A stretch of DNA of 64,000 bases from Pavona decussata (GCA_977016875.1 CDRNST010000186.1:2542001-2606000), one strand, 5' to 3'. Shown: positions 1-51,003, numbered from the stretch's first letter. The notes: generated by a model from the sequence alone, not told the origin. Made by a program: numbers and translations.

Positions 1-342
1 CCTGCTAAACGATCAACTTTATAAAGCGATTGAATCGGTCCTGACGCTTTCATCGAATATTTTTACGTTTGAGAAGCCCTGTCAAGAAGAAAAACTTTCA
101 AAGTCTATCCAATTTCGTTTACTGAGCTGGAAAATAATTTCTTCTGCTTCCCAGCTTAACATCGACCTGCGAATAACATCTTAGACAACCAGCGAACGCA
201 GATCGCCGGAAATTAGTCTGCGTTTGCAGGCTACATCTTAGATCATCGAACGACCTTTGTATGAAATAGCTAAAAAGATATCGGAAATGCATCATATCAT
301 GCGATCAGAGTTATAAGGCGAACAAATACAATCATAACTGAC

Positions 343-2972
343 CTTTGCCTGATCAGATGTCCCTCTAGAAGAAGGTGAATCCGTGTTGGAGTAAGGGACA
401 CGAACGCACGCAAGATCTCCAGGATAAAATTCCAGTTGTCGGCTACTGCAGTAGTTCCAGGGAAGAGAAATCTGCCCACAAACAATACCATCATCCTGCT
501 CCCACACCACGTTAATTTGTTCAATGATGAAGCCGTCATTCTCCTTGACAGCTTCCGTCGCGGCCTCCATCGCAAGGACAGGCTTCCAAGCATTTATGTA
601 CTCATCAATGCTTCCATACCTCTCTCTTGACGCCTGATGTCTGGCCGTGTGAGCAAACGACTCGCGCGGGTACCTTCGATGCTCGATGCAGATATTAATG
701 TGAGTATTTATCTTGAACAACTGAATATCAGGCTCCAGTATTCCACGTATCATATGAGGGCAGAGCTGTACAGAAAAGAAATCGTAACTTTTCAAAGGAA
801 GACTTTTCTCATAAAAATGAGAAACGGTTTCACCGGAAAATGAGGGAGCCTTGTCATCGTAATGAGGATGTTTATAAGCCTCACCACGGGCGTACTCAGG
901 CGAACTGCGTTGTGGAATATCCTCAAATCTCTGTGGTGCAGACAAGATTCTCAACTTGGCTTCTGTTTGCTTGATTATCGTAGTTAGCTCGTTCTCGTCA
1001 CTGGACCTTATGGCATCCAATACACGGAGCCAAATATCAGAGGGAATCTCCACTAATTCCCCAATACCACCGTCGCATTCTCCCCGTAAGTCTCCTTGAG
1101 CGTCTGGCGCTACGTACTTCCTAAACCTCCACTTGAGAACAGTACACTTATGTCCATTCCCGTCCACGTCTTCCTCTTTTAGAGCAACTGGATTTAGATG
1201 GCTTAGGAGCAATCGCTTTTGTCTCCCTGCTAGGTGGTCATCCTCTGGCTTGGAAAAATTAAGACTGATTGACTGTTGGTCAATAGATTCAATAAAAACA
1301 CGTGTGTCATGGCACCGCTGTTGAAGCTTGGTTGCCATGTGGATTCTCTTACAATCCTTGCCAAATTTTCGTGCGTTGGCTTGTAGGAACGTTGAGCGGC
1401 GACAAACTTTTCTTATTTCATCCTTCGTCATGTTTTCTTCATAACGGCTACCAGATTGTAAACCAAGAAGGAGACGATGGACTATGATGTCCATGTACCG
1501 CCTTATTGGAGACGTAAACTGAGTGTATGATCGCATACCAAGTGAGTAGTGTTGGATCTTCTCGGAGGGCTGATCACCTTCACAGACAAACCGGGACTCG
1601 GACTGAATCCGTCTAAAATGGGACTGTGCTGCAGCAATTTGAGGGTGGTTTCTCTCGTTGCATATCAGTTGATGAGCTGTGGGAAGATCACAAGACTCTA
1701 CAGCTTTACATATTGCACCCCAAACAGACTTGTGGATTTTGAACGAAGTCTTCTCAGAATGCATCACATTTAGTGGTGGTGACTCACTCGATTCGTTCTG
1801 GAAGATCTTTGCAAATTGAAGTGACAATCTAGCGTATTTGCCGTACATTTCAACCCATTCAGCTAGTCTGTGGTCTTTAGGAGGTAGCTGTACTCTCAAA
1901 GGCGCCAATTCAGAACACTTTTTGGACAGAAATTTTGCGACTTCCTCGTTAGCAAGAATCATCATTTCTTCCACCAGCTCGTGAGCTTCAACAAACTCAC
2001 CAACCCCCTCGTTTTGCCAATGATCAAAGGCACGGTCTCCCAACCGGTAACGTCTTCGGTTTTGAGCGAGTGAGCTTAATTGCCTGACCTTTTCCATAAT
2101 TTCCTCTGAGACTTCTCTAGTGCTCACACCTCTTCCATCTATAATCACTTGAGCTTCAGTGTAACTCAGCCGACAGCAGGATCTGACAATTGTGCGTTTT
2201 ACGTTTGGTTCTTCAGTCACCTTTCCTTCCTCGTCAAGTGTGACAAACACTGATATTGCAAGACGTTCCTTGTCGGGCAGAAGACTGCAGTGGCCTTCAC
2301 TCAGCTCACGTGGCAGCATTGGGATATTTTCTTGTTCTTCCCCAGGGTAATACGATGTGCAACGCAAGAAGGCTTCATGATCCAGTGGACAGTTTGGTTT
2401 TACAAAGAAACTGACATCTGCAATGTGGATTCCTACCAGGAAAGCGGATGATGAGGTTTTTTCTATCGTCAGGGCATCATCAAGATCTAGAGATCTCGGC
2501 GGATCAATGGTAACAGCTTTACTAACCCTAGTACGACTAGCGTACTCGTTCTCAGGAATGGACCACTCAGGTGGAAATTTCTCCTTGACATATTTCATGG
2601 TGGCTTGTTTAAAAGCTCTTCTTATACCACGCTCAGCGTAGGCAATCTCCAGGCTAGTCTTCAGGTCCTCCCCTCTGGGCATTGTTTTTACGACAATTCC
2701 TAAAGGACAGCTGAAGTCTCGTCTCCACTGAAGGTACTTCACAACAAACAGGTACTTTCCGCTGAGGACCTTCTCTCTCTTCATCATGTTGACTTTAGTC
2801 GCCCTGTCGTTCTGATCCTTCTTGTAGATTGGTATATCTTTACAGCTCCTGTCTGTTAGATTCACCAGTTTTGTAGCTGACTTGTTTATGGGTACCATCA
2901 GAGCAGGGTTTTCATAGTCTGTGGTGCACACAAACTGGCGTTCGTGGGGGCTGATAATGTGCTCTAGTACAC
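343..2972 (-). CDS. Gene A exon: OB/cold-shock + RNB (RNase II/R/Dis3 family) exonuclease domain and downstream linker
   Basis: ORF 292..3039 contains TIDPPRSLDLDDAL, VGIHIADVS, HELVEEMMILANEEVA and YTQFTSPIRRYMDIIVHRLL; acceptor at 2973/2974, donor GTCAG at 342. Confidence 0.93.
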
Positions 2973-5900
2973 CTGTGTAAGGTAGACGAGTGAAGATAAA
3001 TGGAAGGTTTGTTATTTTACATTTTACATACCCACACATTTATATGTGGCTGTAAGTGGCTTTTGTGGAGGCGTAGCAACCTATCATGATTAGTGCATGA
3101 GTCTCGTACGAAACCTCAGGTGTGAATGTAACTAGTAAGAGCATTGCTCTTTGCTTTTTATTAGGACCTTCTTTACCTTGTAGTATAAATGTTAACTGGG
3201 AGTGAGACGGGGGCTCTGAGGGGATGAATATCTCCTGTCCATCGGAAGTTACAATGTTCCTAATTTTATAAATTCTAAACCGGATACCGGGGCAGCACGC
3301 TGATAATCTAACTGCTGTATGAGTTTAATGGATAACTGGTAATATGTTGTTTAACATCTTTAACGCTATACACCTACCCACAACCTTTCCTTGGACGTGA
3401 GGTTCACTGCCATCGACTTTTGAGCGGGCTTTCTTCTCAATTAGCTCCAAGACCACCTTATCTTTGTCGAACGCTTGGCGAACTCTTCCTTTGATTTGAA
3501 TGTCTGGAGTTTTGGTGTCTTCTATCTCTGCATATCCCACCTGGGATTTTTCGGGACTAAGACGAAGATTGCAGACAATGTACTTTTGCGGCTCATCGTC
3601 AAGAAGCTTCCTCAAGACAGAAGGATCCAAAAATTCCTGTTGTTTCGTGGAAGCTATAATTCGCTGAGCCCTTTCGGAGGGAGACTTGTAAATGCCAAGG
3701 TTTGTAAGACGCACCTCGACGCGACCATTGACAACTCTTACTTCTGGAAACAGATCTTTGAAATCCCCTTCTTCCTTAAATAAGTAAGGCTCCTCATTCC
3801 CAGGTGACTGAATTTTGCTGATCTTAGACATGGAGGCCTCCAAGGGAGGAAATTCAGACTCTTCAAACATTCCCCTTCTGTCTGCATCTCGCTTCAATGT
3901 CTCCTCGCATTCCTTTACAAATGCTAGAATAATTTCATCCATAAATCTCGGAGATACAGTTTCATCTTCAAGAAGGTCATCTTGGAAGTCTCCTGTTTCT
4001 GCAGTTGCATCGTCTGGTTCTTCTTCCTTCTCTTCTTGATCATCATCTTGTTTTTCTTTATGCTGTTCATCCCGGTCCTGAGCCATGTTGTAAGTATATG
4101 AGGCGTCTACTCGATCGTGCTCATCTTTTTCGTTGGCATTTTCACTTCTTTCCTGAAGACCACTTGAGTGCAACCCATAACCTTCTTCGTCTTGTATTTC
4201 TTCAAGAGCCTCTTGGTTGTTAGAGGCATTGTTTCCTCCAGACGCCGATGTGCTGACACTTTGTTCTGGCGCTGGTGGACATTTTGGGATAAAGGGCTGT
4301 GCTTCCGGGTTAAGCTGGATGCTGGCGATAGCTGCGTTTATGTCTTTCTCAAGCTCAACTATAGTTGTTCCAAACAGCCCTCCTTTTTGGTCACATCTCT
4401 TGATGTAGTCTCTCCAAATACTGCGACATTCTCCAACGGTACACAGCGATACAGGGTCACCGACAACAGCAACCAAACACCTGGCTCTAGTCACCGCTGT
4501 GTTTAGCAGTTTTGGATCAGACAAGAATTCCCAGTACAACTGTCGATCAGATCCACTGGCACGTATCTGTTCCTGCTGTGGCTTGCAGGTATGAAATGTT
4601 CGAACGGTGCTGATGAAAAGCACTCGAAATTCTTCCCCTTAATTGGGAAGCAAGTAATAAAAGCAAGCATTAAGTCTCCCACATTAGGTAATCAACGCTG
4701 CCTAGTCAGAGAATCAGTCAGTCAGTCCAGCTGTCAGTTTTTGAGCTGGAGAAATAAGTCTCTTTTATAGAGAAAAGGGTTTCCCTAGCAACCGAGACAA
4801 GGTTTCTGGTTTTTTAAACAACTTTTTCAGGTAGCATTATTCTATAATGACAGCCGTGACAATTCAAGAATCACTCCCAACAAAAAAATTAGTTTGAAAG
4901 ATCCTAAATCGATTTACAAAGTAATTTTCTGTTCAATATAAATCAAAACACAGTTTTCGAGTAATTTTTTTTTAAGCAATTTTAAAGAGTTTTTATACAC
5001 AAATTAGGAATCGTCTGTTATTCAGGCCGTTTCAACAAGAAACATTAAAAGCAAAATTTCGCTGAAATATGCTGTTCAGTAATATTTTACTATAGGAGAA
5101 CTTAAAGTAATTTCAATTTACTGTGAAATAAAATCAGAGGCATTCACGGTGAATCGCTAGGGAAACCCTCCCGCAGGCCCTTATCCGTTATTTAGGAAGA
5201 CTGCAAGTCCATATCATCCTCCATTTTTAAACCAGTCAGTCAGTCAGTCAGTCCATCAATTAGCGAGGCAGTCGATCAGTCAACTAGAATGATCACAAAA
5301 CTTTTTATGTTTCCATTTCCGTAAATTATTGATGTTCCACAAGGATAAAGCAATTTACGTTCAATTATACATTTCAAATTTTGAAGATGGTGACATTTTT
5401 TCTTTACCTTGAACATTGTGTATTGTATCCACTTTCACTTCCTTCAGATTCTCCTTCCTTAGGCTATTTCGGATGGCTTGTACCTAAAACCATTAACCCT
5501 TTTTAATATTGAGATCATAAAGTGTCATATGGGTCATATCCTATTTTAAGTTTTATGGAATTCCCTGAAGGAGAACCTGGATACATTTCAAAACTATATC
5601 TAAGTTTAGGATAAGCGGCTTTCCGCTGACACAACGCAAAAAGTCAACAATTCTTGTCAATAATGACTGGCTCAGTATTTCAGTTGAAACACAGCGTCTC
5701 AACGCTGAATGTTGTTTTGACTGACTTAATTGAGGTAGCAAGAAAACCTTGTTCAACTAGCTATTGCTTTCAACAGAAAGCTATTAGGAGCGCGATAAGC
5801 TTTGTTTCCCCTTATGATCGCTTTCAGAAATCAGAAAAATTGATTCCAATTATTGAGTCTCACCTGGTAACGATATGAGGACAGAACAGCTATATCAGAT

Positions 5901-8900
5901 CGTTTCTCAGGACCCCAAACACGAGGCCAATTGCTTGCGACCTCTTTCACTCTCTTGACGACTTCGTAAACCTCAGACAAGTTAATATAGGAGTTGTCAT
6001 GCTCCTTTTGCTCCTTGCCACGAGCTGAAAAGAACAACAGAGGACCGTACTTCGGATGCGCTGGCTGAGATTTTTGACCTCGAGGAACCAGTTTTTCCCC
6101 ATAAAAATTGTCAGAGGGAAACTTGAGGATATCCTCATGGCAACGATAATTCTCCGTCAGGAACAAGACATTGGATTGCTCTAGTGCCTCTTGCTTATCT
6201 TTGGGTTGATCTATTGCCTCTTGCTTATCTTTGCCATAGAGATCAAACAGCCGTTCAGCTAAAGATTTTTGTAGGCCCAGCCGCCTTGCTTGAGGAGAAT
6301 AAACCTCTGGGCTCATCTGAAAGAAACGGGGAGGCAAATACGTTCAGGTGTACAGGGCTCTCTAATAAACAATCGTTTTACAAATGGCGATTGATTTTCT
6401 CAAACAATTTTTTAGCCAACATAAAACAGATACCTTGCGAGATTGTTTGATAAGATATTGACTGATATAATTCGACTCTGAAGCGGCCATTTCGAATTCA
6501 TTGCACGCATCAACACCACTACACGAACGGCTAATTTTAGCCTTCAATTTTTGTACCGTACTGTCCTAGAACCATTAACCATAACAATAAACGGCGTTAA
6601 TGTGCGTGATCAGTTTAAAAGGTAACACTTCTTACGCCGTCTTTGGATAACTGTTGTATAAGTGTATATTACTATTTATGTCATTGTAACAATTGGATGT
6701 GTGCTTTTTTCAAAGGGATGTCGGGCCCACTGGCATGGTCAAGTCTCTTTTCCTGCTGACATGGTAAATATACATAAAGGGAATGGCTTGTGGCTTGTGG
6801 AAGTAGCAACTGAGAACTGCTAACCTTTACCTAAGGCTAGCAACACTTACAGAATACTGTTATTATTTACCTTTCAATGCGCACATGTAATACAATACCT
6901 GCATGTGATCACCAGTAAAGACGACCTTGGTGTTAGGCCCAGCGAAGACCAATGGTGTTAGCGCCTCCGGTTCAAGTGCTTGGGCGGCCTCGTCAATAAG
7001 AATGTGGGTAAAGAAGCCATGAAACACTTGTAGATCAAGTAGCACTTGTGATGTGCTTAGAGTGGTGATTACAACACGATGTTCAACAAGGTCGTCACGA
7101 GAAGGCAGCAAGAACAGGTCGTCTTTGATCAGACAGTAATTCCTCGCTGTTTCGGATGCCGTTTCCAACCTAAATGAAATGACCAAAATTTATATTTAAG
7201 CGATCTAAGAAATTAGCATTTTGCAAGGCTTTGCAAAATTGTCTTGCGTTTCACTTTTAGACTTGCAAAATTTGCAGTCAATGTTTTGGGATAATTATTG
7301 TCAGCTAACAGTTTATTCTAAACTAGATACACCTAAAAATTGCCATTATGAAATTGAGTTTCGAAAAACCATACTTTTGTCACAACAACAGAATTAATAA
7401 TTACTGAATTGCCTCCGAAATGATATAAGAAGCACAAGCAGATATTTTGGGGGCTGTTGCTTTTCGCAGTATGACTACTTCAACTGTAGTGTTTGACATT
7501 TACATCATTAGTAGTATCATGCTAATCGGCGGGGGGCGTGATAGCATACATAACGCCGAGGAGGCACTTTTGTAACAAAAAATGCTACCACACAACATAA
7601 ATCTTGTACCTGCCACTATTCTTTGGGACGTGCTTAACGATGTAGTTAACCGAAATATACAAGTTATTTGCAGAACAGTCAACGTACCTTCTCATAGGCT
7701 GATAAACCCTCAATGGCCTTGCTGCAGGTACGCCGTTCTGTTTGGTCAAGTACTTATCTAACAGCTCCACATGAATATCAGCTGCACGATTTGAATGGGT
7801 ACATAGGAGAATCCTATGTGACTTATCTAATTGAACCAGCAGGCGAACGGCTTGATTCAACGTGAACGTCTTTCCAGTCCCAAATGGGCCAAACACCACC
7901 AGAGGAGGAGCGTTGTACTCGGGCGAGGCAATTCGCTGGATTACCTTCTTTTGGTTCTCATTCAGTCGTTGATCGAGAAGCCATTGCCAGCGAATTTTCA
8001 CCTAAATATTTGAACGGTTGGTTAGTTCACCAAATATGACGTTTATGCTATGAGAAATGGAAGTTGTAAATTGCAAAATATTTTAAGGAAAACGAAAAAA
8101 CTTTTGAGTCAATAAAACATGTTTCGACAGAAACTTCTGTCATCCTCAGTTAAAGTACAAAGCGGTAGAAGTTGAATTTATAATAAGTAGACAAAAACGT
8201 TAATTATGGTAACGTTAATAACAAAATGAAAAATATTCTGATCCTAGTTGTTGCCATGCTCCAATCGGTAACAAAACGAGTCCACATCTCATGTAGATTA
8301 AAGAAATCCAAATAATTCCTTCCTTCTCTGAATGAAAAGCTAGACAACTATTTAAGCAGCCACCAACAGACACTTGCATAAGTTAATGTTAACATTAACG
8401 AACTTCAGCAGCAGTTTGGAAAAGGATTTTATTCTCTGGTAGCTGCTCGTAGGCTATTTTTGATCTTATTCGCAACGACTTGATCTATGAAAAATGAGAT
8501 AAATGGTATAAATATGTGGTCATTGCCAAGGAAGGGGCCTGACGTAAAGGCTTGGGTTCTTTTAGCCCCTTGTGACATATCCTGAGTATGTTTTTTGGTA
8601 CGAATTTTTAACTACTTACTTCACTCCCGACAGCAACGGAAACGCTTGGCTCTGGAAAAACAAGGCGCTTTAACTGCCCCGTTGTAAGCCGATCAACGGC
8701 CGCGTGCATCTTACAAAGCGGCCAGCGGTTCAACTGGAACTGGGAATTAACAGTAATATCACAAGTGTCATAGAGCTGTAGGTCAGAGCGCATTTTGGAT
8801 GACAGTCTCAGCACAACACATTCACTCTCTACTTTCTCAACAGGGGCCTCATAGACTTTGTTAGAGACGCTTAGAGCCTGCTGTAGCCATACGGAGCTGA

Positions 8901-17900: not shown

Positions 17901-20900
17901 AGTCATTAACCGAGCAAAAATACGTCGGTATTAGTAGGCACCGTCCTTAACGGTTATTACTGGCGGCCGTTTTGTAAAGGTATAAGTGTGAGTTAATTTG
18001 AGTACGTAAACGGATCGGTGGTCAGGACAAAAGAACATGAACTGACGCTGCAAAAAGAGAGCTGCCATGGAATAACAATTAGAGTGTTTGAGTGAATGTC
18101 ACAAGTGCTAGACGTACCTGAGAAAAGGCAGCCGTTTGTTGATCTCGACCTTCTGCTGACGAGTTTTCTATACCTACATCAGAATGCTGCTTTTCCACGG
18201 TGCTCTGCTTATAAAAAGAAACACTTGAGATTTGCAAGGATTGTCCGCTAAAACTGTGTTAACTTTTTAACTGGTGGTAGCCAATAAATATCTCAAACGT
18301 CTTTTAACGTCTGTAAATACTAAAAGCGTCTTTAGAAAAGCAATAAATTTTCATTTGCTTTTTATAAAAACAGCAAGACAAAACTACAAAAGTAACTTTA
18401 GCGGAGCAACACTTCTATTCGATTGTTCGGCTGTTGCTCGTAACAGATTAACACTTGTTATATACTTTGTCACCGCGTTTTGATATTTACCATCGCTTCA
18501 GTTTAAAAATTCCACACTTTTGGTTGTTGAAAGAACAAAATAACTAAGGGGGTGTGAAAATGTATTAAGGAACATACTCTGATCTATAGGCGGGAAAAGA
18601 AAAAGGTAAAGAGAATTCAAAATGTAAAGCTAGCTGTCCTATTTTGGATTCAAATCGGGAGGGAGGAGAGCGAGGGGGAGGCGGGGGGGGGGGGGGGGGA
18701 GAGGGGACTAGACAAGTTTTCATGGCTGTTGTGGAGAGGTCCCCGTTAGTTGGCCTAAAATAATATCACAAGTCCCAGAGGTACCTGAAGCAATACAGGC
18801 TGTTGATTGTGTCCTTTGGCTGACGCCGAGTTTGGTATTTCCGTATCAGGTTCTCGCTTTTCCGTTATGTTCTGATTACAAAAGTAAAAACACTTAAAAT
18901 TAAGGATTGCCAATAATTGCTGATACCCGAGAATAGTTTCAGTATAAAAATGAGAAAGGTTTATTTACTTTTATGGAAACAAATCGCCATGAAAAGGAAC
19001 AAGTACGACAACTTTGGAGCTTTTCTCAGTTTCATTGCTCGGCTATTGCTAATGAGAACTGAATCAAGTGGATCTTTCCAATCCTGACGGTAACGACACT
19101 GGTGTAAAACGCCTAAGTAGGTGGGGATTTGTGGATTTTGTCCTTTCATTTTGGAATTTCGTTGAAAAATTGATACACTAGATGTTCTGAAATTGGATAA
19201 CTGATTTAAATATTTATTCCGTAATTTACAACAGTACAATTTTTTTGAAATGCTCTTACGATAGAAGCTAAAAATTCAATTGATGTAAAACGTTGTAAAA
19301 TATATTTTACCATCTCTTGTTTTGTCCGTTCTGCTTTCTTCAAGCTTTGAGTAATTCGACGCATCATCGCGAGAGCTCTTTCGTTACCAGATTCAAAATA
19401 TAAAACTAAAAAAAGAAACAAATGAACACACTAAACCCGTTTTTCATGACATTGCAGAAACATTGTTCGTCTGAGACAACGTTAATTGTCCTGACTATGT
19501 GTCAAGTAGATCGTCCTTACAAGGCCTGTGCAACACGGAAGCAGTCTTGGTTTCGTCTTTCAAGACGCACCGTTTTGAATCGGTCATTATTCCAGTCGGC
19601 GAACTGCGGCGCACGTAACAATGTAGACTAAACTCTGCTTACATGGATAGTTTGCCTCCCCTGACTGCAAAAGTGATCTATGATTTTGCCCGGTGAGGGT
19701 AAAAGGCGGCATGAGTTTGCGGAATGGCATGTGGCATGACCTGCGGCATGGCATAATTATGCGAAATACGATACTTGCAGAATGACTTAAAGAAATAAAT
19801 TAAAAGGAGAGCGCGTCCTGTTTTCGCGCCAATTTTATAATTGTAGTTGTGGACTCCAAGCTGAATATTTAAAAACAACTAGACGACAGAAAGAGGATTA
19901 GAAAATACAAGTCAAGGGACTGAGTAAATTTAAGTTTCATGTTCGCTTTTCACCTTTTGACTTCCATGTAATTGACAAAGTTCAACTTGCGTACGTATCT
20001 CGCCGATAATGTATAAAGGTGAGAAAAAAAAGAACCTATTTCTGTCTTGAGTTTGTTACAAAATTTTTATTCGTTACAATAACCGTTAAATGTTCACAGC
20101 GTCTGACAAAGCAAAGGCCAAACGCATTTTTAAGTTCAATAACAGTTTCATACAAGAAAAGCGAAGAAACTTCCCAGCTTTTCCTGAAAGCTAACCTGGC
20201 CGGTTTGACAGCGAGCCGGAATAACTAACAAATACAATTTCCAAAAGCGGCAAAATTTGTTAAACATCGCATCGAGGAATATTTACCCCCTTAAATTAAA
20301 AAGATTGGCTATAAATATTCGTGATTTGAAACGGCGGGCGAAGAAAGTGCATTCGGTGGGTAGGTCACAGGTCAAGCTGTAAGTTGTAAGTTTCAGTGAC
20401 CCGACCGGCTGGGGAGGGTAGCGGGGTATTTTTCCTTACGACCCACATATTTTATTAGGCGTTAACACGACTATAGCTCGTTATATCTATGAAATAAAAT
20501 TCTGGGATAACAATGTGGAATTAGATAACAAATGCGATACGTGGTGGAAAAAAAAATTACCCGGCGGAGGTGCCGTGGCACCGGTGACTATAGACCACTA
20601 CATAATGTTTCAGCACTTTAATACCCGAGCCGAGGTCTCACCCAAACTGACTCGGGAAAAGGTAACATATACTTTTGATATTACTTCGTTTTTTCTTTAA
20701 CAAGACGTATATTAACATGATGAAGGGGATATTTTTTTTTCCACAAAAGGCGATTAACCATCTGCGAACGATCGTACGCGTCCGAGAGTAGGCCGCCCAA
20801 AGTCTACAATATTTTTCAAAATTACGGAGAAACCTCAGGCGTTCAATCAGCCAATCTTTAGCATGTGTTTAGGTATTAAAGGAACTATATACTAGAAAAT

Positions 20901-21296
20901 GTTCTGCTTGCTCCCGTCCTTCTGAGGTAAGTCATTGTGATAAATGCAAAAAGTGTCCGAGAATAGGCACATGTACTCCTATTTCCTTGAATGTGAGAAC
21001 AACAAACAGTATTCCAGTCATCGATTTCTTCACCCTCGCTTTTTCCTAACCACCGATCAGACATGTTCTATCCCAGCTGCAGGCTTGTATTTTCTCATCA
21101 GCCCATCTGTTGCATTTTCCGCAACATCGAAAAAGCTAATGCTCTTATATTAAAATTGGCGCCAAAAAGAGATGCACTTGTTTCTTTGAGTCATTCCGCA
21201 AGTATCGTATTTCGCATAATTTTGCCATGCCACATGCCATTTCGCAAACTCATGCCGCCTTTTACCCTAACAGGAAGTGCACGGCCAATCAAGCAT

Positions 21297-21369
<73 letters not shown>

Positions 21370-24300
21370 ACCGCAGTTACGTATGCAACATAAAACAACT
21401 GCTAATAAAAAAGAAAGCCTAAAAACCTTTCAGGTTTCAACGGGAATTCACGCCATGGATTCGAATCCCTTTGAAATGTTATTTTTCTAGGCTTTCTTTT
21501 TGAAGCTGCCTAAATTACGTACATAACTGCGATTTTATTCTTTCGCCCGCAGTTAAAACATATGGATTTCATAGATTTCACTTCCATACCCTTTGCGCAG
21601 TCATCTTTTGCTTCGCCGTGTCTTCNNNNNNNNNNNNNNNNNNNNNNNNNNNNNNNNNNNNNNNNNNNNNNNNNNNNNNNNNNNNNNNNNNNNNNNNNNN
21701 NNNNNNNNNNNNNNNNNNNNNNNNNNNNNNNNNNNNNNNNNNNNNNNNNNNNNNNNNNNNNNNNNNNNNNNNNNNNNCGATTAAAGTTGTACTATCAACT
21801 ACTTACCCTGTACGATATCTAAAAAAAATAACCGTCAGCATTGCTAGCTTCTGTTAGGATACTCAAGGAAGCATTTTACGACATGGAAAATAAGGTACGT
21901 TGTGAGGTTTTCTTTGTCAACTTGTTATTCCCAGTTGTGGTAACAAAGTAAAGACTTGACCAATGTTTTTTTTGCATGTCGCCGAAGGTAAACAGTGGAG
22001 GGTATAAGTATGATAATATTTTACCAGGTTCAGCAGACATTCCGCCCTCCTAAGCAGAACTCCAGGAAGAAACTTAAAGTATAGTAACTCCAGTAACTCG
22101 CTGAAATATTCTAAAGCTGCTTCCATTTTGTTACGTCTCATCTCTTCGTCGGCAAATTCCAGCATTGTTATCACTACATCATGAACCAGTTCATCATCCT
22201 GTTAACAAAGAATACATTTGAAAGTTTTTACGTTCTTTCCAAACTTTATGGCTTTTGCCCATGCAAATTCCTGGTGCAGTAGAGAAGCTAAAGAAAAAAG
22301 AAGGCAAAAAAGGAAACACCGTTGTGTTCATCTACGCATGGCGTAACTTGGCACTACACCTTGATATCAGCTAATTTTTTTGAGGTGGCCAAACACAATT
22401 TCCGACCACTGGTACGTAATTCATCACTGTTTTCGAACATTCCACGCTTTGTGTTGCTTTGCAAGTGTAGTATCGTACTGTTAGGACTGGGCACTAGGCC
22501 TATTGTATGCTGGGACTCTGCAGGCCCCGTTAAGTTTGTTCGGTCGATGCCAGCATGGCAGCTTTTGTTGTACGATAGTTTCATGGACTATTAAAACAAG
22601 TTACACAAATAAATGCCTCTCGTGTAACATGAACTAATAAATAGCGCAGCGCACCCAAACTGTGGTTGACCAATTTTATTAGGAATTCACCTTTTTTATC
22701 TCTTCACTGAGCTTTTCCTTTACCTCTTGTAAGGCCGTCAGGGTCTTTTCACACTGAAAATCAATTCACGGGTAACAGTCAAATGGATAAATTTACTCTA
22801 TTCGTGGCTCTCCCTTAAATGTTTCCTCCCTGGAGTCCTTTACTATAACGTGCCGAGAGTTCCAAAGAGTAACGGATGGGAAGGGGGTGGGGTCACAAGA
22901 CTAGGAGCCTGTCTCCATGTAGTTTTAATTAAAACACTTTAAGGTTGAGCTCCATACAGGTAAACACTTTTCTGAGGTCAAAATTTAAATGATTTGAGAT
23001 AAAAACAAGCGATAACAATGTCGAATGACGTTTCGACGACTCCGTGTCACTATTAAAATTTAAATGGAAACCACAATACTTGCTAAACAGGTAGGATTTG
23101 GTTTATTATTTTAGCATTTAGAATTGAACGTCAGATATTGCTTAGTGGATTACTTACATCTGGTCTCAAGTGTCTGCACAACACAGCATAAGGCAGTGCC
23201 TGAACATAATCTCCAAGACTTTCGATTGCTTTCATCTTGATGAAAAGTGATTTGATAACTAGGTTCAAGTTGTTGCTGCGTTTTGCAATTCCAATAGCTA
23301 ACAAATAAAGAAAAGAACCACATCATTTCCGATTATTAAAATCAGCTTCGTACAATAACTTGCCCAGTGTAAATAACTACAACGCAGAAACACAAAAAGG
23401 GATTACAAAGAGGAGAATATAATTGTGAATATATAAAATAAACACAGAATCTAGAACGTTAGAAATGATATAGATCCTTTACAGGGTGGGTGACGTAATA
23501 GAAAGCTAGAGTTTATTGCCAAGAAAATATTGTATTGTAGCTGAAAGAAAATACAAAAAACCTATTCCCTTTTTTAGGGTAAAGGTAGATACGAGATATA
23601 AGAGTTACAAACTACCCAGCAGCATCAGGAAGACGTTCATAGATTGCAGACAGATTAAAATCAGGGGAAGGTAGCCTTTATAAAAATCGTGCTTCATGCC
23701 TTTTAACTTGTCTATGATTTGTACTTTTCAAAGGTTGCTTTTTATACATCAATATACAAGATGTTACTTAAATAATCATGCAACTGAAAGCTGATCGGAT
23801 CATAAAAGGCACAGACATGTAATGTACTTAAAAAACTACCTGTTTCGCTGTCGTCAATAGCCTCAAAATATTTGCCCTGCGGGATAAGGAGGCACAGAAG
23901 TAGTTAGAACAGTTTGAACGGTTCATATCTCTCTTCAACGAAATGATAGTAGAAAATTTGCTGTTGCTCTTGCTACCTAATTGAGTGAGGGAGTGAGAGA
24001 AGCTAATGATAACAATTTTTGTCATAAAATTTGATCTGTGGGGCTGCGCTGGTCCATTGTTGCGGCAAAAAAGACTATTTTGATTGGTCCCCTAAGATGT
24101 CTGGAAGTTTTGGTACGGACAACCAATGCGGAGCGCCAGTGAGTCACTCTTACTTCACTGGCTTGTTTTAAGAAAAGTAAAGAGTTTCGTGTTTCAGTCG
24201 TAGGAACTTTTTCCTATACTTTCGAAGTGAGCAGCGATTGATATTTTAAAAATTAAATGTAATGCGCTTTCCATGCCCAACGCTAATGAGCCTGGAGAAT

Positions 24301-27300
24301 ATTAATAATACATGGTTACTTTGGAAAAAAGATGCTTTAATTTTTAGCTTTATCTTTTACTAGCTGTCATCGACCGCAAAATAATTCCTCCGATGCAAAC
24401 ATTATTGTAGAATAGTTCAGTGACATCTATAAATTCAAACTACAAAAAAAAAATCTTGAGAAAAACAACTGACCTTGTCTAAGCATGTTCAGGTTGGCTG
24501 AAAATCCGCGGCGTTAATTTAACTCGAAAATTATTTTGAGTGCTTATTTCATAGAAAAATAGAAACCTTTCATTACCTGGTCAGTTTCTTTCAAGTTATG
24601 GTAAAAAGTTTGAGATGTAACCCTCGGTTTTTCTTCTTCTTCCAAACTTGCACACTAGTACCCTATAAACTTTATAGAGGCTTCACCATCAATCCACAAT
24701 AAACGGTATAAAAAAAGCTTACCAATTTGAACTGACATTCGGCTCTCCTACGAAAAAGATGCTCAGAATTGATAGCTACTTCTTCAAAGGAAGTAATTGG
24801 ACATTTGAGCGCTATAGTATAGATTGCTTCAGCCTTGTGATATTCTTTCGCACGAAACTTGTCGTCACCAATCTTTTTAAGCTCTTCCACGTTTAGTACG
24901 CCCTGCAAATACGTATACAGAAAGCAGAAGTCATCAAGGAAATTCAAAAGAAATTAAAACGCGATCACTGGGGAAGTGAACAACCATGTTGGTTCCGAGC
25001 TGGATATTATCGACATATCGACCCAATTAAACGGTACGTGTACATTAGCGTTTACATTTCGCAAATACAATTCTGTAAGATATTTTAAACCGACGTTTCG
25101 GCAATGCCGATTGCTGAAACGTCGGTTTAAAATATCTTACAGCGTCAATTTTATAATATTGTGAATTCATATTTATTAACTACGCTGCGCAGTATTACGA
25201 TCTTTCTTACATATAAGGAATGTTTAATGGCAGAGCACAAAGGAACAGCGATGTTTCCTTTAAGGCTGGTTTCCATATGATCGCAGATCGCAATAAGCGT
25301 CTGCGATCATATGGAAACCAGCCTTTACTTTCACCAAATTTTTTCTTCACATGCCCATAACAAGCACTGTACTATGACTTATAAAGGCTTGTTGAAACGG
25401 TTCCAACATTTGACCAACATTCGTTCAACAAAAGTTGTACAGATGTAGGTCAAATAGTGTTCAAACGTTTCCAACGCAATTCAAGATTTTCAAGAATAGA
25501 GGATGTTGAATCGATGTTGAATGAAAGTTTGAACCAATTTAAACTTGATTCAGCAAGCTTGGCAACAAGCTTTCAAAATTTTTATGTTGAAACGACAGAC
25601 CTGTTTTAACGTCCCTGACATTTGGTTCAACAAACTGTTGAACGCATTGAAGCAAATGTTGAAACCGTTTAAACGGGCCTTAAGTCACTGATTTCAGTAT
25701 GAATCAGTTTAAAAAAAAAAAAATCAACATGAGATCGCTGATCCTTACCATGAATGACAGCATCATTAAGTGCGCAATTTCTGAACTATAAATTCAAAGG
25801 AAAGGAATTAAAACACAAATTAAAAACAGCAGCGTTCTTTAGCTAGAGAGTTTATCTGCGGAACGAAGACGGCAGTAACATTTACCAGTAAGTGGAGGCG
25901 TTAAATCCGAAATTAAAAAAAAAAAAAAAAGAAAATTGCCTATTTTGTTAAACATGCAGCAGACAGTCGTCCTCCACTACAATATAAAATAATTTCCATT
26001 TCTTTAAATGTTCTTCTGATCTAAGGTACACTTAGAAGCTATTGGCTTGTTTACCAAGGGCAATTCCCAGTTTTATGTGAAGGCTCATTTTGCTTCTGAG
26101 ACCTTCAAATGATCCATGCAGGAACTATTTTTTTAAGAACTAAACTTGCATGAATTAAAGTAGTAATATTCCTTGTCTGCGGCGCGACCAAAATTATTTC
26201 TGAGGATCTCGGCTTTATTAGTCCGTTTTTATACCATGAACCTCTATCGTGGCATTTTAGTTTTGCAGTTTCTTAACCGAGTAACTGATTTTTCGTGTGA
26301 ATGCTTTCTGCACCAATTGTACACTAAGAGGTCACTTAAAGTCATCAATGGTCATATAAAATGGCGTTTGGATTGCTCCAATCATTGAAAAAATTGTTCA
26401 GTTTAATTTTAAAAGATACATTTTAAGTGCTATGCAATACCGAGCAGAAACTCGCTATCTGCAACGCTACTGCAACGGAGAGATCAAATTTGACAGCCAT
26501 GTCAATGAACGATCGAGTAGCTCAGGACGGGAAAGGAGAAAATTTCTTCTAGAACAACAAGCTTTACTACCTAATTACATCCATTTTGAAATCACTGGTG
26601 ATCCTTGGAATCTGATTGGTCCAAAATGATGCAATTTATTCCCAAATTGCACCATTTTTTGCTCTAAATTGCATCCTTTCTTTAGCCCATCAAAATGGAA
26701 ATGAAGTAACACAAATAGAATATTAATATTGACAATGATACTCTGTGATTTCGAAATGGATGTAGTTAAGTGGTAATTAAACTTCGTGTTGTGCAATTTT
26801 GGTCTGAAATCATACTTGTGATTTCAAATCAAACTCGCATTGCGCGCTCGTTTGATTTTGAAATCACGCGTATGATTTCAGACCAAATTGCACTCCACTC
26901 AGTTCAATTACCAATATAAATTAAAAAGTTAAACTTTATTTACAACATAATATATTAATAAAAAAGAGGTTACAATTAAGTCAGAATAACTGAAAAGCTA
27001 ATCGAGCTGAGTAAAACTAAATAATGTTTAAATAAAGCTTGAGCAAAACAATTGATTAATCACTAAAAAAAGATGAAAAGAATAAATAAAATAAATACAG
27101 TCGAACCTCCACTAACGGCCACCTCTCCACAACGGCCACCTCTCTACAACGGCTACATTTTTTTGTCCCGGCGGACAGTCCATACATTAGCTCTTGTTTA
27201 AACCTCTCTACAACGGCCACCTCTCTACAACGGCAACGGCCACTAAAGTGCGTCCCCAACTGCCAAAATAACCTCTCGACAACGGCCAGTACAGTTCTTT

Positions 27301-28388
27301 TTTGTAAAAACCATTTTTTATAAACATGCAGTAATCGACATTTGTCTTCGGAACATTACGTTTCTGTATCCATTTTAATGATATACGTATTTTGATTGTG
27401 TTCCATTTTTATGCTGCAGTAAGCATAAATTGTCTACAATAATATAGCGAATATTGCGAACCTTGCTCGTTTCGTCTGTTAACATTTTGATTCAAAACAT
27501 TATTTACGTTTTATTGTGTATTTTATCTATATATATATATATATGTTATTTAAGATTGGATTGCCATTATAGCATGAACTTGGCACAATAAACATGTTGT
27601 ACTTCCCGAAAAAAAAGGTGTCATATTACACCCCTACCTCCCCATAACGGCCACCTCTCCACAACGGCCACTTTCTTCTGTCCCCAAGGTGGCCGTTGTG
27701 GAGAGATTCAACTGTAAATAAGTACCAGTTGAAAACTCATGAACCCTTGATCCCTACTCTATTTCACACGGCAAACAAATATCAAAGCTACCGATAGCTG
27801 AACCTTTCTTTTCGTTTTAAAATCCATCGAAATGTCTTGACCTTTGTTTAACTAAATTCTTCTAAAAGCTTTGAATTGAACTAGGTTTCCAACTATTGCC
27901 TCTGTACTGGCGACAGTCTTGTAGTCAATTAGGTTGCAACTATCGACAAATGGCATAAACAGTAACAGCATTTCCTGCTTTGATACAAACAACTCAAAAG
28001 ATTTTACAATTAATCCTCCCATCCACATTCTCATGAGAAGTAGAACTACGTCCAACACCATGGTCAACAGCACGGCGGAAAAGTGCAACGGATTTTGATA
28101 AATAGAATATGAATGCTAACACTTTTAGATTTCATCCACAGACTCAAAAGCTAGAGTAACGTCTTATTTAATTCAACACAAGTAACAAGACTGTATAATT
28201 AAGTTCTGTTCGCTAGCTTTCATTTAGATGATAGCAGGTTGAGACTCATGCGCAGGATTAAAAGCAAAATAAGAACATAAACTATTTTTAGAAAGGATTT
28301 TCGCGGAAAGTGTTTTATAACAAAGTAATAAGGCGAGCGCTCACCTTTCCTCCTCGTCCATCCAGGATCTTGCTCCACCTTCCGCCAT
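343..28388 (-). CDS. HELZ2: Gene A: multi-exon HELZ2-like helicase/RNB exoribonuclease with N-terminal TPR and CCCH zinc fingers; 3' part continues beyond the window start
   Basis: Phase-compatible GT/AG exons read manually: 28345-28388 (MAEGG...), 25749-25785, 24723-24902, ~23158-23297, 22025-22198, 21590-21625(+gap), 19311-19405, 18785-18871, 18118-18207, 17274-17351, 16462-16513, 16038-16127, 13999-15171, 12642-13604, 12327-12471, 11671-11860, 10742-10858, 9588-10150, 8620-9064, 7688-8001, 6899-7169, 5864-6316, 5408-5483, 3378-4637, 343-2972. Motifs: GPFGTGKT (Walker A), IDEAAQ (Walker B), GDHMQ, ENYR, LNTAVTRAR, RNB TIDPPRSLDLDDAL and FTSPIRRY. The helicase/RNB part is solid; linkage of the 5'-most exons is less certain. 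Confidence 0.85.
3378..8001 (-). CDS. Gene A helicase domain 1 (UPF1/SF1B-like), 5 exons, plus acidic linker
   Basis: LNENQK (Q motif), FGPFGTGKT, THSNRAAD, LIDEAAQ, TGDHMQ, ENYRCH, NVQGEEF, LNTAVTRAR. Small exon 5408-5483 (VQAIRNSLRKENLKEVKVDTIHNVQG) is not in the ORF track. Confidence 0.93.
4776..5169. mobile_element. Non-autonomous TIR element (MITE)
   Basis: 14-bp terminal inverted repeats AGGGTTTCCCTAGC ... GCTAGGGAAACCCT, AT-rich non-coding interior. Confidence 0.55.
11671..15171 (-). CDS. Gene A CCCH zinc-finger region (ZC3H7/HELZ2-type fingers) with Ser/Thr-rich linkers
   Basis: CRHFSANMRCPKEPCTFPHG..ELTMWTMER, CRQYAVNSCLRTTCSFPHG..ELLMWTMER, and a finger split by an intron LCR|SCYTRERCRFGRGCIFAHS.QELNEW; preceded by W..IRPYP and CKACEN motifs typical of ZC3H7-family fingers. 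Confidence 0.85.
16636..16762. mobile_element. Short palindromic MITE (GGCC-terminal, PIF/Harbinger-like)
   Basis: GGCCCAGTTGTTCAAAGAGCGG ... CCGCTCTTTGAACAACCGAACC inverted termini with internal TGGATA/TATCC repeats. Confidence 0.65.
17568..17950. mobile_element. TTAA-flanked MITE (Kolobok/piggyBac-type target site)
   Basis: TTAAGGACGGTGCCTACT ... AGTAGGCACCGTCCTTAA perfect termini plus long imperfect internal inverted arms. Confidence 0.8.
19311..24902 (-). CDS. Gene A TPR-repeat exons
   Basis: ELKKIGDDKFRAKEYHKAEAIYTIAL...LFRRRAECQFKL; KSLFIKMKAIESLGDYVQALPYAVLCRHLRP; LLRRAECLLNL|(G)RHGEAKDDCAKV|LYFESGNERAL match the TPR helix-pair consensus; canonical splice sites. Confidence 0.75.
19691..21273. 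mobile_element. ~1.6 kb non-autonomous DNA transposon with long (~130-150 bp) imperfect TIRs
   Basis: GGTGAGGGTAAAAGGCGGCATGAGTTTGCGGAATGGCATGTGGCATG...GCGAAATACGATACTTGC at 19692 is mirrored by GCAAGTATCGTATTTCGC...CATGCCGCCTTTTACCCTAAC ending ~21271; no transposase ORF. Confidence 0.75.
21303..21367 (+). repeat. (AG)n microsatellite
   Basis: Uninterrupted AG dinucleotide run. Confidence 0.98.
21372..21530. repeat. Imperfect palindromic short interspersed repeat
   Basis: CGCAGTTACGTATGCAA..AAGAAAGCCTAAAAA mirrored by TTTTCTAGGCTTTCTTT..TTACGTACATAACTGCG; central B-box-like GGATTCGAATCCC. Confidence 0.5.
21626..21777. other. Assembly gap (N run)
   Basis: Run of N that abuts the 5' edge of a TPR exon. 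Confidence 1.
25073..25142. repeat. Near-perfect 70-bp palindrome
   Basis: CTGTAAGATATTTTAAACCGACGTTTC..GAAACGTCGGTTTAAAATATCTTACAG. Confidence 0.85.
25262..25325. mobile_element. Minimal hairpin MITE (26-bp perfect arms)
   Basis: AAGGCTGGTTTCCATATGATCGCAGA - 12 nt loop - TCTGCGATCATATGGAAACCAGCCTT, flanked by TAA/TTA. Confidence 0.7.
25385..25680. mobile_element. MITE with imperfect TIRs and internal TTCAAC/GTTGAA repeats (Harbinger-like)
   Basis: AGGCTTGTTGAAACGGTTCCAACATTTG ... CAAATGTTGAAACCGTTTAAACGGGCCT. Confidence 0.65.
26572..26920. repeat. Interspersed repeat with long 3' hairpin
   Basis: GTGCAATTTTGGTCTGAAATCATAC..GTGATTTCAAATCAAAC mirrored by GTTTGATTTTGAAATCAC..GTATGATTTCAGACCAAATTGCAC (~26791-26893). 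Confidence 0.6.
27098..27714. mobile_element. Tc1/mariner-pogo-type MITE with TA target duplication
   Basis: TA|CAGTCGAACCTC ... GAGATTCAACTG|TA; multiple internal ACAACGGCCACCTCTC repeats. Confidence 0.8.
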
Positions 28389-30182: not shown

Positions 30183-30222
30183 TTCCATGAAAAAGCTTTC
30201 ATTTCCGGTTGTTTTCTCGGAA
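30183..30222 (-). promoter_or_regulatory. Candidate immune-inducible promoter module of gene A: GAS - ETS/IRF composite - GAS
   Basis: TTCCATGAA (30183-30191), CCGGAAATGAAAGC on the minus strand (30195-30208), TTCTCGGAA (30214-30222). It lies ~170-210 bp upstream of a minus-strand splice donor at ~30005-30010 that could end a non-coding first exon spliced to the acceptor at 28402. Confidence 0.4.
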
Positions 30223-30876
30223 ACCGTCGGATGACATAACTGGAGAGTGCGTCTGAACCTGTCACAACATGACTCCGTGAACAGCTGTTGACACTAGAAG
30301 CAAGGCCTTCATCGTCAGATAAAATTAGCCTTAGACTTCGTGAAGAGCGAAGCCTGGGGAGAGACCCAAACAAAATGGCAGCCACACGATCAAGCTTGTT
30401 TGAAACCGAAGAAACAGTATTTGAAAGAAATTGTTTGGTAGAATCATTCATTGATTGGGAGAGTGATTGTTTTGAGCTTGTACTGACTACGACTAATGTC
30501 AGAAGTCCGTCGCTGGTGTGAACGGTGAAAACGATGCTCCTACAAGAATAGTTCGTGTTTTGTTCCACTAGAATAAACCTGTACACGGTGTCGGACGCTA
30601 CCTTGGTTGGGGGGGCCAAACACGGCTAAAAGTTTCAGTAAATCGTGGGGATTTTGGCTGACTTTGATTACTCCGCTTAACACCGACGTACTTTCAAAAA
30701 TAAAAGAATGGTTATTCTATATCTCCGCTACATCAGTCAGATTAGATGAAAAAATTAAAACATTTTAGACACATGTTACGACGTTCGTGTTACGACGTTC
30801 GTTAATTACCACCTTTAAGTTTTGCCACGTTTGCCGCTCATGCAACCAAAATTGCGTCAGAAACGGTGAAAATAGC

Positions 30877-50954: not shown

Positions 50955-51003
<49 letters not shown>

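Follow-up and report, generated by a model that had tools for sequence, protein, structure and literature searches.

Gene A, on the minus strand of the 64,000-nucleotide stretch of Pavona decussata DNA analysed here (the window), is a single real gene, expressed and very large: it occupies about 45 kb and encodes one protein of roughly 3,900 residues. We identify it, with a probability of about 0.87, as the coral orthologue of HELZ2, a 3′-5′ exoribonuclease with two UPF1-like helicase domains, in a long form that is common among invertebrates, and we describe its structure, transcription and splicing, its domain content, its intact catalytic motifs and its orthology. From the N-terminus, the protein contains two TPR units of three exons each, a linker with acidic and lysine-rich parts and three ZC3H7/HELZ2-type finger modules, each with a CCCH motif, followed by helicase 1, a PAM2-like motif, the HELZ2 OB fold, the RNB nuclease and helicase 2. 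It is the closest match to the Acropora orthologue P0169 (RefSeq XP_067044297, "3′-5′ exoribonuclease HELZ2-like" isoform X1, Acropora muricata, 3,589 aa).

In the window, the gene model begins on the minus strand with the ATG at 28388 and reaches the donor at position 343, and its 27 exons add up to 9,750 nt, that is, 3,250 codons with 0 stops; in a 26-exon version the other two frames contained 153 and 247. Every visible junction is AG/GT, and the gene extends about 17 kb beyond the left edge of the window. The boundaries placed by an earlier sequence-only reading at 24902, 23297, 19311, 18871, 16038, 15171, 7688 and 343 are all true splice sites; exons 25785-25749 and 22753-22691, the latter overlooked in that reading, were added to its model. 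The features are the following:

28345..28388, minus strand: coding part of exon 1, assigned from sequence; starts with the ATG at 28388 and reads MAEGGARSWMDEEE up to the donor GTGAGC, phase 2 at its end
25749..25785, minus strand: putative exon 2, a 37-nt micro-exon (..SEIAHLMMLSFM), phase 2 to 0; matches Acropora EEMATLMSMA
24723..24902, minus strand: exon 3, 180 nt, start of TPR unit 1 (ELKKIGDDKFRAKEYHKAEAIYTIAL ... RRRAECQFKL); splice sites, HMM E=1e-12
23840..23876, minus strand: exon 4, 37 nt (GKYFEAIDDSET), phase 0 to 1; splice sites and phase
23158..23297, minus strand: exon 5, 140 nt, end of TPR unit 1 (KSLFIKMKAIESLGDYVQALPYAVLCRHLRPD); HMM E=8e-13, 56% identity to Oculina P0178
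22691..22753, minus strand: exon 6, 63 nt (CEKTLTALQEVKEKLSEEIKK), phase 0 to 0; AG/GT sites, matches Oculina CDKTKTFLKDLKENLRDAFKK
22025..22198, minus strand: exon 7, 174 nt, start of TPR unit 2 (...LLRRAECLLNL); E=7.5e-13 to P0169 residues 162-223, HMM E=1e-4
21626..21777, no strand: assembly gap of 152 N, covering the last part of intron 7 with its acceptor and, by phase arithmetic, the first base of the 37-nt exon 8
21590..21625, minus strand: exon 8 as far as it can be read, RHGEAKDDCAK followed by 1 nt, closing in phase 1 at donor GTATGG; Oculina counterpart CNEAKDICAN
19311..19405, minus strand: exon 9, 95 nt, tail of TPR unit 2 (VLYFESGNERALAMMRRITQSL...); RNA contigs X1 record 4 and X3 record 14, sites, frame
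18785..18871, minus strand: exon 10, 87 nt, linker; RNA joint 18871/19311 in X1 and X3, exon covered by an X6 contig, sites
18118..18204, minus strand: alternative in-frame cassette exon, 87 nt (29 codons), open in frame; included in X1 record 2 and X6 record 22, skipped in X3 record 14
17274..17351, minus strand: exon 11, 78 nt, linker; RNA contigs, sites
16462..16513, minus strand: exon 12, 52 nt, linker; joint 16513/17274 in X6 record 19, sites
16321..16356, minus strand: exon 13, 36 nt, linker; joint 16127/16321 in X1 and X3, sites; upstream joint predicted
16038..16127, minus strand: exon 14, 90 nt, lysine-rich linker (KKRKKNKQKKMKKKKKKAQEK); joint 15171/16038 in X1, X3 and X6, not in the DNA-like X15
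13999..15171, minus strand: exon 15, 1,173 nt, low-complexity sequence, then finger module 1 (Cys cluster and CCCH CRHFSANMRCPKEPCTFPH at about 14098); entered by RNA contigs
12642..13604, minus strand: exon 16, 963 nt, finger module 2 (CCCH at about 12738); sites
11671..12471, minus strand: exons 17 (12471-12327) and 18 (11860-11671); third, classical CCCH finger across their junction (CRSCYTRERCRFGRGCIFAH..ELNEW)
8620..10858, minus strand: exons 19-21 (10858-10742, 10150-9588, 9064-8620), pre-helicase region; weak MOV10-helical match (Pfam E=0.005), sites
3378..8001, minus strand: exons 22-26 (8001-7688, 7169-6899, 6316-5864, 5483-5408, 4637-3378), helicase 1, PAM2-like motif and HELZ2-type OB fold; Pfam, motifs, sites
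343..2972, minus strand: exon 27, 2,630 nt, RNB exoribonuclease domain; donor AAG/GTCAGT at 343, phase 0

RNA contigs, frame checks and collinear orthologues support the central claim of the sequence-only reading, namely that one transcript and one reading frame run, without a stop, through the TPR exons, the linker exons, the CCCH modules, the helicase and the RNB domain. In contigs of three runs (X1, X3 and X6, from two samples), splicing leads from the last TPR exon, 19405-19311, through a series of five small linker exons into the exon of the first CCCH module at 15171; the joints are 15171/16038, 16127/16321, 16513/17274, 17350/18784 and 18871/19311, all GT..AG on the minus strand. A single contig of 2,641 nt spans all the linker exons and continues for 896 nt further upstream. 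None of these splice joints occurs in X15, a DNA-like run in which the introns are covered. The joint 16356/16462, between the two smallest linker exons (13 and 12), is absent from the joints listed and would follow from the lengths of the pieces and their canonical AG/GT sites. Along the chain from the TPR tail to the CCCH exon, the frame set by the latter has 0 stops, versus 8 and 25 in the others. The lysine-rich stretch of exon 14, of a type also present in Oculina and amphioxus, is possibly nuclear-localisation-like.

From the TPR exons onward to the 3′ terminus there is about 11.7 kb of coding sequence, and the RNA contigs cover part of it rather than one entire molecule; RNA mapping was confined to one stretch downstream of exons 1-8. 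The phases, the collinearity with orthologues and the 896-nt upstream run of the RNA contig argue for the inclusion of these exons, the gap-cut exon 8 among them. Exon 2 is the sole strong AG..GT candidate compatible in phase, and the N-terminus resembles Acropora MAEGSEAF...WEE and Oculina MAQGGHHLGLDEEE. Single TPR exons are faint by Pfam (exon 3, with 43% identity to P0169 residues 24-93, matches TPR_BSK1_C at E=0.013). We built an HMM from the HELZ2 front ends of four phyla and ran it against all 390 open segments of 15200-30200, both strands included; its matches were confined to predicted exons and followed the order of the profile: 24953-24675 (E=1e-12), 23322-23134 (E=8e-13), 22201-21920 (E=1e-4) and 19430-19209 (E=0.07). 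Ahead of the assembly gap, exon 7 closes at 22025 in phase 0; after it, the sequence is readable again from 21625, two bases into a codon, and exon 8 ends at 21590 in phase 1, the phase needed by the RNA-proven exon at 19405; were its start at 21626, exon 8 would equal exon 4 in size and phases. Because the flanking phases agree, the gap would hold intron, acceptor and one exon base, its true length would be irrelevant to the frame, and the reading frame appears continuous across it. A TPR-less isoform may also arise from an internal start; the Acropora millepora model P0164 begins at the second finger module.

Three CCCH motifs are found in gene A, at about 14098, 12738 and 11865. The module in exon 15 matches modules of P0169, P0178 and P0013, as well as the ZC3H7A finger structure 2D9M at E=0.029, and module 2 is its tandem duplicate, with 53% identity over 116 aa and a shared donor phase. 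Pfam zf-CCCH models match these fingers weakly. At the third-finger position of the front-end profile, 2D9M is matched at E=2.4e-10 and is the sole finger among the 60 best PDB matches listed, which bears out the earlier assignment of the fingers to the ZC3H7 type; similarity to ZC3H7/RoXaN fingers has been published for human HELZ2 (Huntzinger et al. 2023, PMC10516660). The finger exons also carry long low-complexity stretches.

Exons 19-21 share 54-74% identity with P0169. Helicase 1 contains the Walker A motif GPFGTGKT and DEAAQ, and the region 5834-8001 matches Pfam AAA_11 twice (50 bits) and AAA_12 (65 bits). The PAM2-like sequence LNPEAQPFIP lies at 4314-4285 and OB_HELZ2 (PF25049; E=1.5e-13, 50.8 bits, cut-off 29.3) at 3328-4638. 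RNB (PF00773; E=1.4e-72, 245 bits, cut-off 29.3) spans 295-3039, and the four aspartates of its motif I, DPPRSLDLDDA, are all intact. Helicase 2 is located left of the window, at about -2205 to -16247 in window coordinates (Pfam AAA_11 E=4.5e-21, AAA_12 E=2.8e-14), in a region collinear with P0013 and P0169 up to the C-terminus. Hence, the helicase-RNB module proposed from the sequence is present in both its parts but was incomplete, and the earlier interpretation stands for the single TPR-to-RNB frame and the finger type, whereas it fails for the completeness of that module and for novelty.

With respect to novelty, an undescribed invertebrate architecture, in which a ZC3H7-like reader became newly fused to a HELZ2 degrader, had been suggested. 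We found no mention of a TPR domain on HELZ2 in the searchable literature, and in the 2023 HELZ2 paper the N-terminal domains listed are all zinc fingers (PMC10516660); however, that paper already relates the fingers to ZC3H7, and the best long relatives of gene A are RefSeq HELZ2 or HELZ2-like proteins in which the architecture is largely annotated already. P0169 is collinear with gene A over residues 24-3588, its identity to gene A being 43-52% across the TPR exons and reaching 89% in the helicase, and Oculina P0178 provides an independent join of TPR, linker and finger module 1. An N-terminal TPR precedes fingers, helicase and RNB in RefSeq HELZ2 or HELZ2-like models of Acropora muricata, Branchiostoma (amphioxus), Glandiceps (acorn worm), Patiria (sea star) and Antedon (crinoid), and UniProt/RefSeq HELZ2 models with precomputed PF00515/PF07719 occur in Cnidaria, Cephalochordata, Hemichordata and Echinodermata. 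A new fusion is largely refuted by these TPR-headed models of four phyla, and we hold it to be improbable. Since coral, amphioxus, acorn-worm and echinoderm gene models have the same layout, gene A belongs with the ordinary HELZ2 proteins of invertebrates and does not represent a new protein type; the TPR-headed protein is the ancestral-looking form of a known family.

Still less likely is that the TPR exons constitute a separate small gene upstream of a TPR-less HELZ2, the joined RNA being a minor read-through or conjoined transcript. Such an arrangement would accommodate the approximately 4 kb between the last TPR exon and the CCCH exon, the HELZ2 paralogues of this genome, including the tandem neighbour gene B, in which no TPR exons were seen, and the existence of TPR-only or TPR-less database fragments (P0177, 547 aa; P0164, 3,048 aa). 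Against it, every RNA contig covering the stretch, in three runs, is spliced from TPR tail through linker to CCCH exon; phases match throughout, with no in-frame stop after the TPR; the order is kept in Acropora, Oculina, amphioxus, acorn worm and echinoderms; and P0177 comes from a 50-kb contig and already extends into finger module 1. Least probable of all is a decaying duplicate, transcribed but non-functional, within a multigene cluster: the genome has at least 8 HELZ2-like loci, 7 of them on the contig of gene A, and the finger exons are rich in low-complexity sequence, but the 3,250 codons are stop-free, the catalytic motifs are all intact, splicing is canonical, expression is seen in several samples and gene A is the closest match to the Acropora orthologue.

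Human HELZ2 degrades structured RNA 3′-5′ in an ATP-dependent manner through the coupling of its helicases to the RNB domain, and is induced by interferon or infection (PMC10516660). By analogy with that biochemistry, we propose for the coral HELZ2 a model in which the fingers would bind RNA, the ATP-driven helicases would unwind structured RNA and hand its 3′ end over to the RNB site, where degradation would proceed from 3′ to 5′. The TPR, of the co-chaperone three-repeat class, would most likely dock a protein partner or a peptide tail, and poly(A)-binding protein may be a ligand of the PAM2-like motif. Interferon induction of HELZ2 is known in vertebrates only, and any immune or antiviral role of gene A is presumptive, as are its enzyme activity and its TPR partner.

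Taken alone, the TPR looks closer to co-chaperone TPRs in general than to that of ZC3H7 in particular. The three-repeat TPRs of HOP/STIP1, SPAG1, UNC-45, CHIP, PP5 and TOM34 show clear sequence-profile similarity to that of gene A over about 130 residues (E 2e-37 to 1e-9), and the TPR part of the profile matches SPAG1, HOP, UNC-45, CHIP and PP5. In co-chaperones, EEVD tails are held by a clamp of five positions; alignment of gene A to HOP and SPAG1 at these presumed positions shows the Lys kept and two Asn changed to Asp and Arg (GD for GN, RRA for NRA). Because two of the five are replaced, binding of Hsp70/Hsp90 tails is doubtful. ZC3H7A and ZC3H7B (RoXaN) resemble the front end of gene A in their succession of TPR, linker and CCCH fingers and in the finger matched by 2D9M, and they are the nearest named Atlas clusters of the whole coral front end (ZC3H7B and ZC3H7A, at 0.88-0.89, a lead only). 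ZC3H7 proteins have about 970-990 aa and no known helicase or nuclease, whereas the frame of gene A runs on into helicase, RNB and helicase, so the likeness is limited to the front end. Human and mouse HELZ2 share with gene A the helicase-RNB-helicase core and the OB fold specific to HELZ2, and at the N-terminus they too have CCCH-type fingers related to ZC3H7. For the human protein, Huntzinger et al. (2023, PMC10516660) describe an N-terminus of six fingers, C2H2-like and CCCH in alternation, and no TPR, while gene A has the TPR in front, three CCCH motifs and, by pattern search, no classical C2H2 finger. Gene A is about 300 residues longer than P0169, owing to longer low-complexity inserts in its two large finger exons. 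Nevertheless, P0169, from another coral species and with about 62% identity in the RNB, has the same TPR, three finger modules, helicase 1, OB_HELZ2, RNB and helicase 2, and shares with gene A even the N-terminal peptide and the small exons.

The minus-strand gene whose exons 1-27 run from 28388 to 343 (gene A) lies downstream of a tandem neighbour (gene B) in the window, placed at G000:C186:2542001-2606000 of a 602-Mb assembly. Between positions 1 and 30000, the large open frames of the minus strand contain an RNB domain (Pfam, E=1.4e-72), an OB_HELZ2 fold (E=1.5e-13) and the SF1 helicase halves AAA_11 and AAA_12. A motif search located three CCCH motifs upstream of these frames:

~14098, minus strand, CCCH motif
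~12738, minus strand, CCCH motif
~11865, minus strand, CCCH motif

Along the locus the gene B 3' end is followed by TPR-like exons and then by the gene A finger exons, and because the TPR-like exons occupy this intermediate position, whether they belong to one gene or two is the key question. Strong frame-preserving GT..AG pairs mark every boundary between the first finger exon and the RNB exon, including the splice sites 7688 and 343 predicted by the sequence-only reading.

Splicing of the TPR tail to the fingers was analyzed by placing reads on one stretch, 15050-21049. Coverage by the RNA-like runs X1, X3 and X6 comprised exons only; the DNA-like run X15 was even across introns and contained none of the joints, and hence serves as the DNA control. 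A 2,641-nt X3 contig aligned in pieces at 15050-15171, 16038-16127, 17274-17350, 18784-18871 and 19311-19406, with a further 88-nt piece fitting 16321-16356 plus 16462-16513; it extends 896 nt more upstream, and none of its pieces falls in 19407-21049. The joint between 15171 and 16038 was present in all three RNA runs, which derive from two samples. That between 16356 and 16462 is absent from the listed joints, and we infer it from piece lengths and canonical sites; with it, RNA joints from X1, X3 and X6 chain 19311 to 15171, the path proposed from sequence. Once alignment ambiguity was resolved, every exon was preceded by cag and followed by gt on the minus strand. The linker chain has no stops in one frame versus 8 and 25 in the others; the open frame is that of the CCCH exon and encodes the TPR-tail peptide SGNERALAMMRRITQSL. 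Some RNA contigs include and others skip an in-frame 87-nt linker exon (18204-18118, minus strand), showing that gene A is alternatively spliced. In all runs, the RNA-like ones included, the intronic stretches 16450-16850, 17450-18050 and 19650-19850 have read depths from hundreds up to hundreds of thousands and show many aberrant joints; they represent repeats of high copy number, probably mobile elements that are transcribed.

Farther upstream the model was built from the following features, the proteins used for comparison being those of Acropora muricata (XP_067044297, P0169) and Oculina patagonica (P0178):

28388, minus strand, start ATG (MAEGGARSWMDEEE), matching the Acropora and Oculina proteins at their N-termini
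25785-25749, minus strand, 37-nt micro-exon, phase-restoring and in agreement with the residues that come next in Acropora
24902-24723, minus strand, exon, phase 0 to 0, from splice sites and phase
23876-23840, minus strand, exon, phase 0 to 1, from splice sites and phase
23297-23158, minus strand, exon, phase 1 to 0, from splice sites and phase
22753-22691, minus strand, 63-nt exon from an unbiased HMM scan, with a residue-for-residue pattern match to Oculina
22198-22025, minus strand, exon, phase 0 to 0, from splice sites and phase
21590, minus strand, end of exon 8, phase 1, exactly that needed by the RNA-proven exon at 19405

The edge of an assembly gap (21626-21777) is two bases ahead of the first complete readable codon of exon 8. 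By phase arithmetic, exon 8 begins at the last N and is 37 nt long, like exon 4. The gap would then hold intron sequence, an acceptor and one exon base, and its estimated length is therefore irrelevant to the frame. The intron that directly follows the gap-cut exon contains a long dinucleotide microsatellite (~21290-21400, translated as SLSLSL...), which may be the cause of the gap.

Searches were run exon by exon or with database proteins, and the joined exons were translated for stop counts and motif location. Across its 27 exons the resulting model comprises 9,750 nt, or 3,250 codons, free of stops and with a single X where the gap base falls; in the 26-exon version the other two frames had 153 and 247 stops. 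With flanks from the same contig, gene A reaches ~-17079 in window coordinates. The second helicase (AAA_11, E=4.5e-21; AAA_12, E=2.8e-14; Pfam) lies to the left of the window, which gives a protein of ~3,900 residues with a complete HELZ2 core. A limited-range search found no frame-preserving site pair at two boundaries there, ~-578 to -1174 and -1341 to -1648, where small unaligned exons are likely.

The TPR domain is barely visible to single-segment searches: the best Pfam match of the open segments in the region was E=0.013, in one segment, since the repeats are split across short exons and fall below Pfam's reach. A HELZ2 front-end profile (corals, amphioxus, acorn worm and sea star), run against 390 open segments from both strands of 15200-30200, hit the predicted exons and no others, in the order of the profile. 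Two further tests agree that the TPRs are real. Against the PDB this profile retrieved the three-repeat TPRs of co-chaperones, SPAG1 (2e-37) followed by HOP, UNC-45, CHIP and PP5, and in the Acropora orthologue Pfam TPR_2 (E=6e-8) falls at the position of window exons 7-9. Exon sets 3-5 and 7-9 are alike in phases and sizes (180/37/140 versus 174/37/95), indicating internal duplication of a three-exon TPR unit. The two large finger exons (12642-15171, minus strand) are likewise tandem duplicates, 53% identical over 116 aa, with a common donor position and phase after ...MER.GG.

BLASTX of 15188-30200 against 150 representative relatives gave no match. The close coral orthologue was hidden within a 50% identity cluster and was found by listing the cluster members. 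This Acropora protein (3,589 aa, HELZ2-like isoform X1) is collinear with gene A over residues 24-3588, TPR exons included, and the Oculina protein (853 aa) independently joins TPR, a lysine-rich linker and the first finger module. Among the long relatives recovered by searching exhaustively with the RNB exon, several carry an N-terminal TPR; these proteins, annotated as '3'-5' exoribonuclease HELZ2-like', 'helicase with zinc finger domain 2-like' or 'HELZ2', belong to Branchiostoma, Glandiceps and Patiria. A local HMM extended the list by three more paralogues of amphioxus, a protein of the crinoid Antedon and two unnamed proteins, and found no TPR in the remaining long relatives. From this distribution across cnidarians and invertebrate deuterostomes, the TPR-bearing form of HELZ2 is probably ancestral. 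RNA joints, the single open frame and collinearity with the Acropora protein place the TPR, linker, CCCH, helicase and RNB exons in one gene, and the earlier proposal of one polypeptide stands. Its companion, that the architecture was unrecognised, fails given the published finger relationship and the TPR-bearing relatives already annotated as HELZ2 or HELZ2-like in A. muricata, Branchiostoma, Glandiceps and Patiria: gene A is a further instance of a known form, not an effector of a new kind, and an antiviral role for it is putative. What is gained is a well-supported, RNA-backed model of a very large coral HELZ2, whose own protein is absent from the searched libraries, and the modest point for specialists that in most non-vertebrate lineages the N-terminus of the family is more than zinc fingers.

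Gene B is 30-60% identical to gene A by segment (window 32885-64000 plus the flank 64001-74000):

~64300 down to 32900, minus strand, gene B, tandem HELZ2-like gene
64282-64115 and 62035-61895, minus strand, two module-type CCCH units
60316-60182, minus strand, classical CCCH, adjoining a second assembly gap (60372-60530)
50023-54399, minus strand, fused OB+RNB exon of 1,459 codons
~48200-34600, minus strand, helicase 2

The region 57500-84000 upstream of gene B has no counterpart of the TPR exons, and no second copy of them was found genome-wide at E<=0.1; an argument from a duplicated unit is thus unusable. The genome has at least eight OB_HELZ2 loci, seven within ~510 kb of a single contig and all in minus-strand orientation (G000:C186 2545376-3052961; the other at C183:242045). 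Their exon structure is of two types, with either a split OB exon (437-489 codons) or a fused one (1,444-1,518 codons), and the set looks like a lineage-specific expansion of HELZ2. Among these HELZ2-like loci, only gene A has the TPR. Three weak matches to TPR exon 3 on contigs C129 and C71 were rejected as relatives, being generic tandem TPR genes without fingers. In these stretches (C129:3016700-3026699, C129:2811300-2821299 and C71:62400-72399) a repetitive acidic open frame lies ahead of near-identical TPR exon arrays (AELFKNQGNDEFRKKEFSKAILLYTKGI...), which are an unrelated, tandemly amplified family. An ORF of 168 codons (30122-30625, minus strand), between the gene B end and the gene A start, matched no Pfam family.

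Human HELZ2 is an active 3'-5' RNase whose helicases enable degradation of structured RNA (Huntzinger et al. 2023, PMC10516660). Gene A keeps the RNB motif DPPRSLDLDDA, and both its helicases retain their motifs (helicase 1, GPFGTGKT and DEAAQ; helicase 2, GTGKT and DECG). By analogy, its mechanism is most likely that of the human enzyme. The fingers would act as RNA readers and the TPR as the docking site for a protein partner. Just past helicase 1, the peptide LNPEAQPFIP (4285-4314, minus strand) fits the PAM2 pattern LNxxAxxFxP, PAM2 being unmentioned in the 2023 paper.

The same study noted HELZ2 orthologues in some corals and molluscs and listed six fingers at the N-terminus as 'highly related' to the ZC3H7A and ZC3H7B/RoXaN fingers (PMC10516660). 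It does not mention a TPR on HELZ2, and in the searched literature no paper connects the two. The residual interest of gene A hence resides in this unremarked TPR and a possible common origin with ZC3H7. The ZC3H7A structure 2D9M matched the front-end profile (E=2.4e-10) as the sole finger among the 60 best matches listed, which supports the published finger relationship. When the coral front end was queried as a whole, the Atlas ranked ZC3H7B and ZC3H7A closest (0.88-0.89), which serves as a lead only, and a query with just the TPR brought up generic TPR families. ZC3H7 was not retrieved by word searches using the Acropora front end or a 7-sequence profile of front ends, in which 8,000 candidates were scored; this outcome does not weigh against kinship. 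We give about three chances in ten to the idea that ZC3H7A/B is homologous to the invertebrate HELZ2 front end throughout (TPR, linker and ZC3H7-type fingers), vertebrate ZC3H7 having arisen by detachment or partial duplication of a HELZ2 front end, or the two sharing one TPR-finger ancestor, with later loss of the TPR from vertebrate HELZ2. If so, the TPR would be an ancient module for docking adaptors within a machine that destroys RNA, and the known partners of RoXaN would become candidate partners of HELZ2 in invertebrates. The TPR and the mirrored layout make the HELZ2-ZC3H7 evolutionary link testable, and point to a protein partner. Taken alone, the TPR looks generic; it is the whole layout of ZC3H7/RoXaN that the TPR-bearing N-terminus of invertebrate HELZ2 mirrors.
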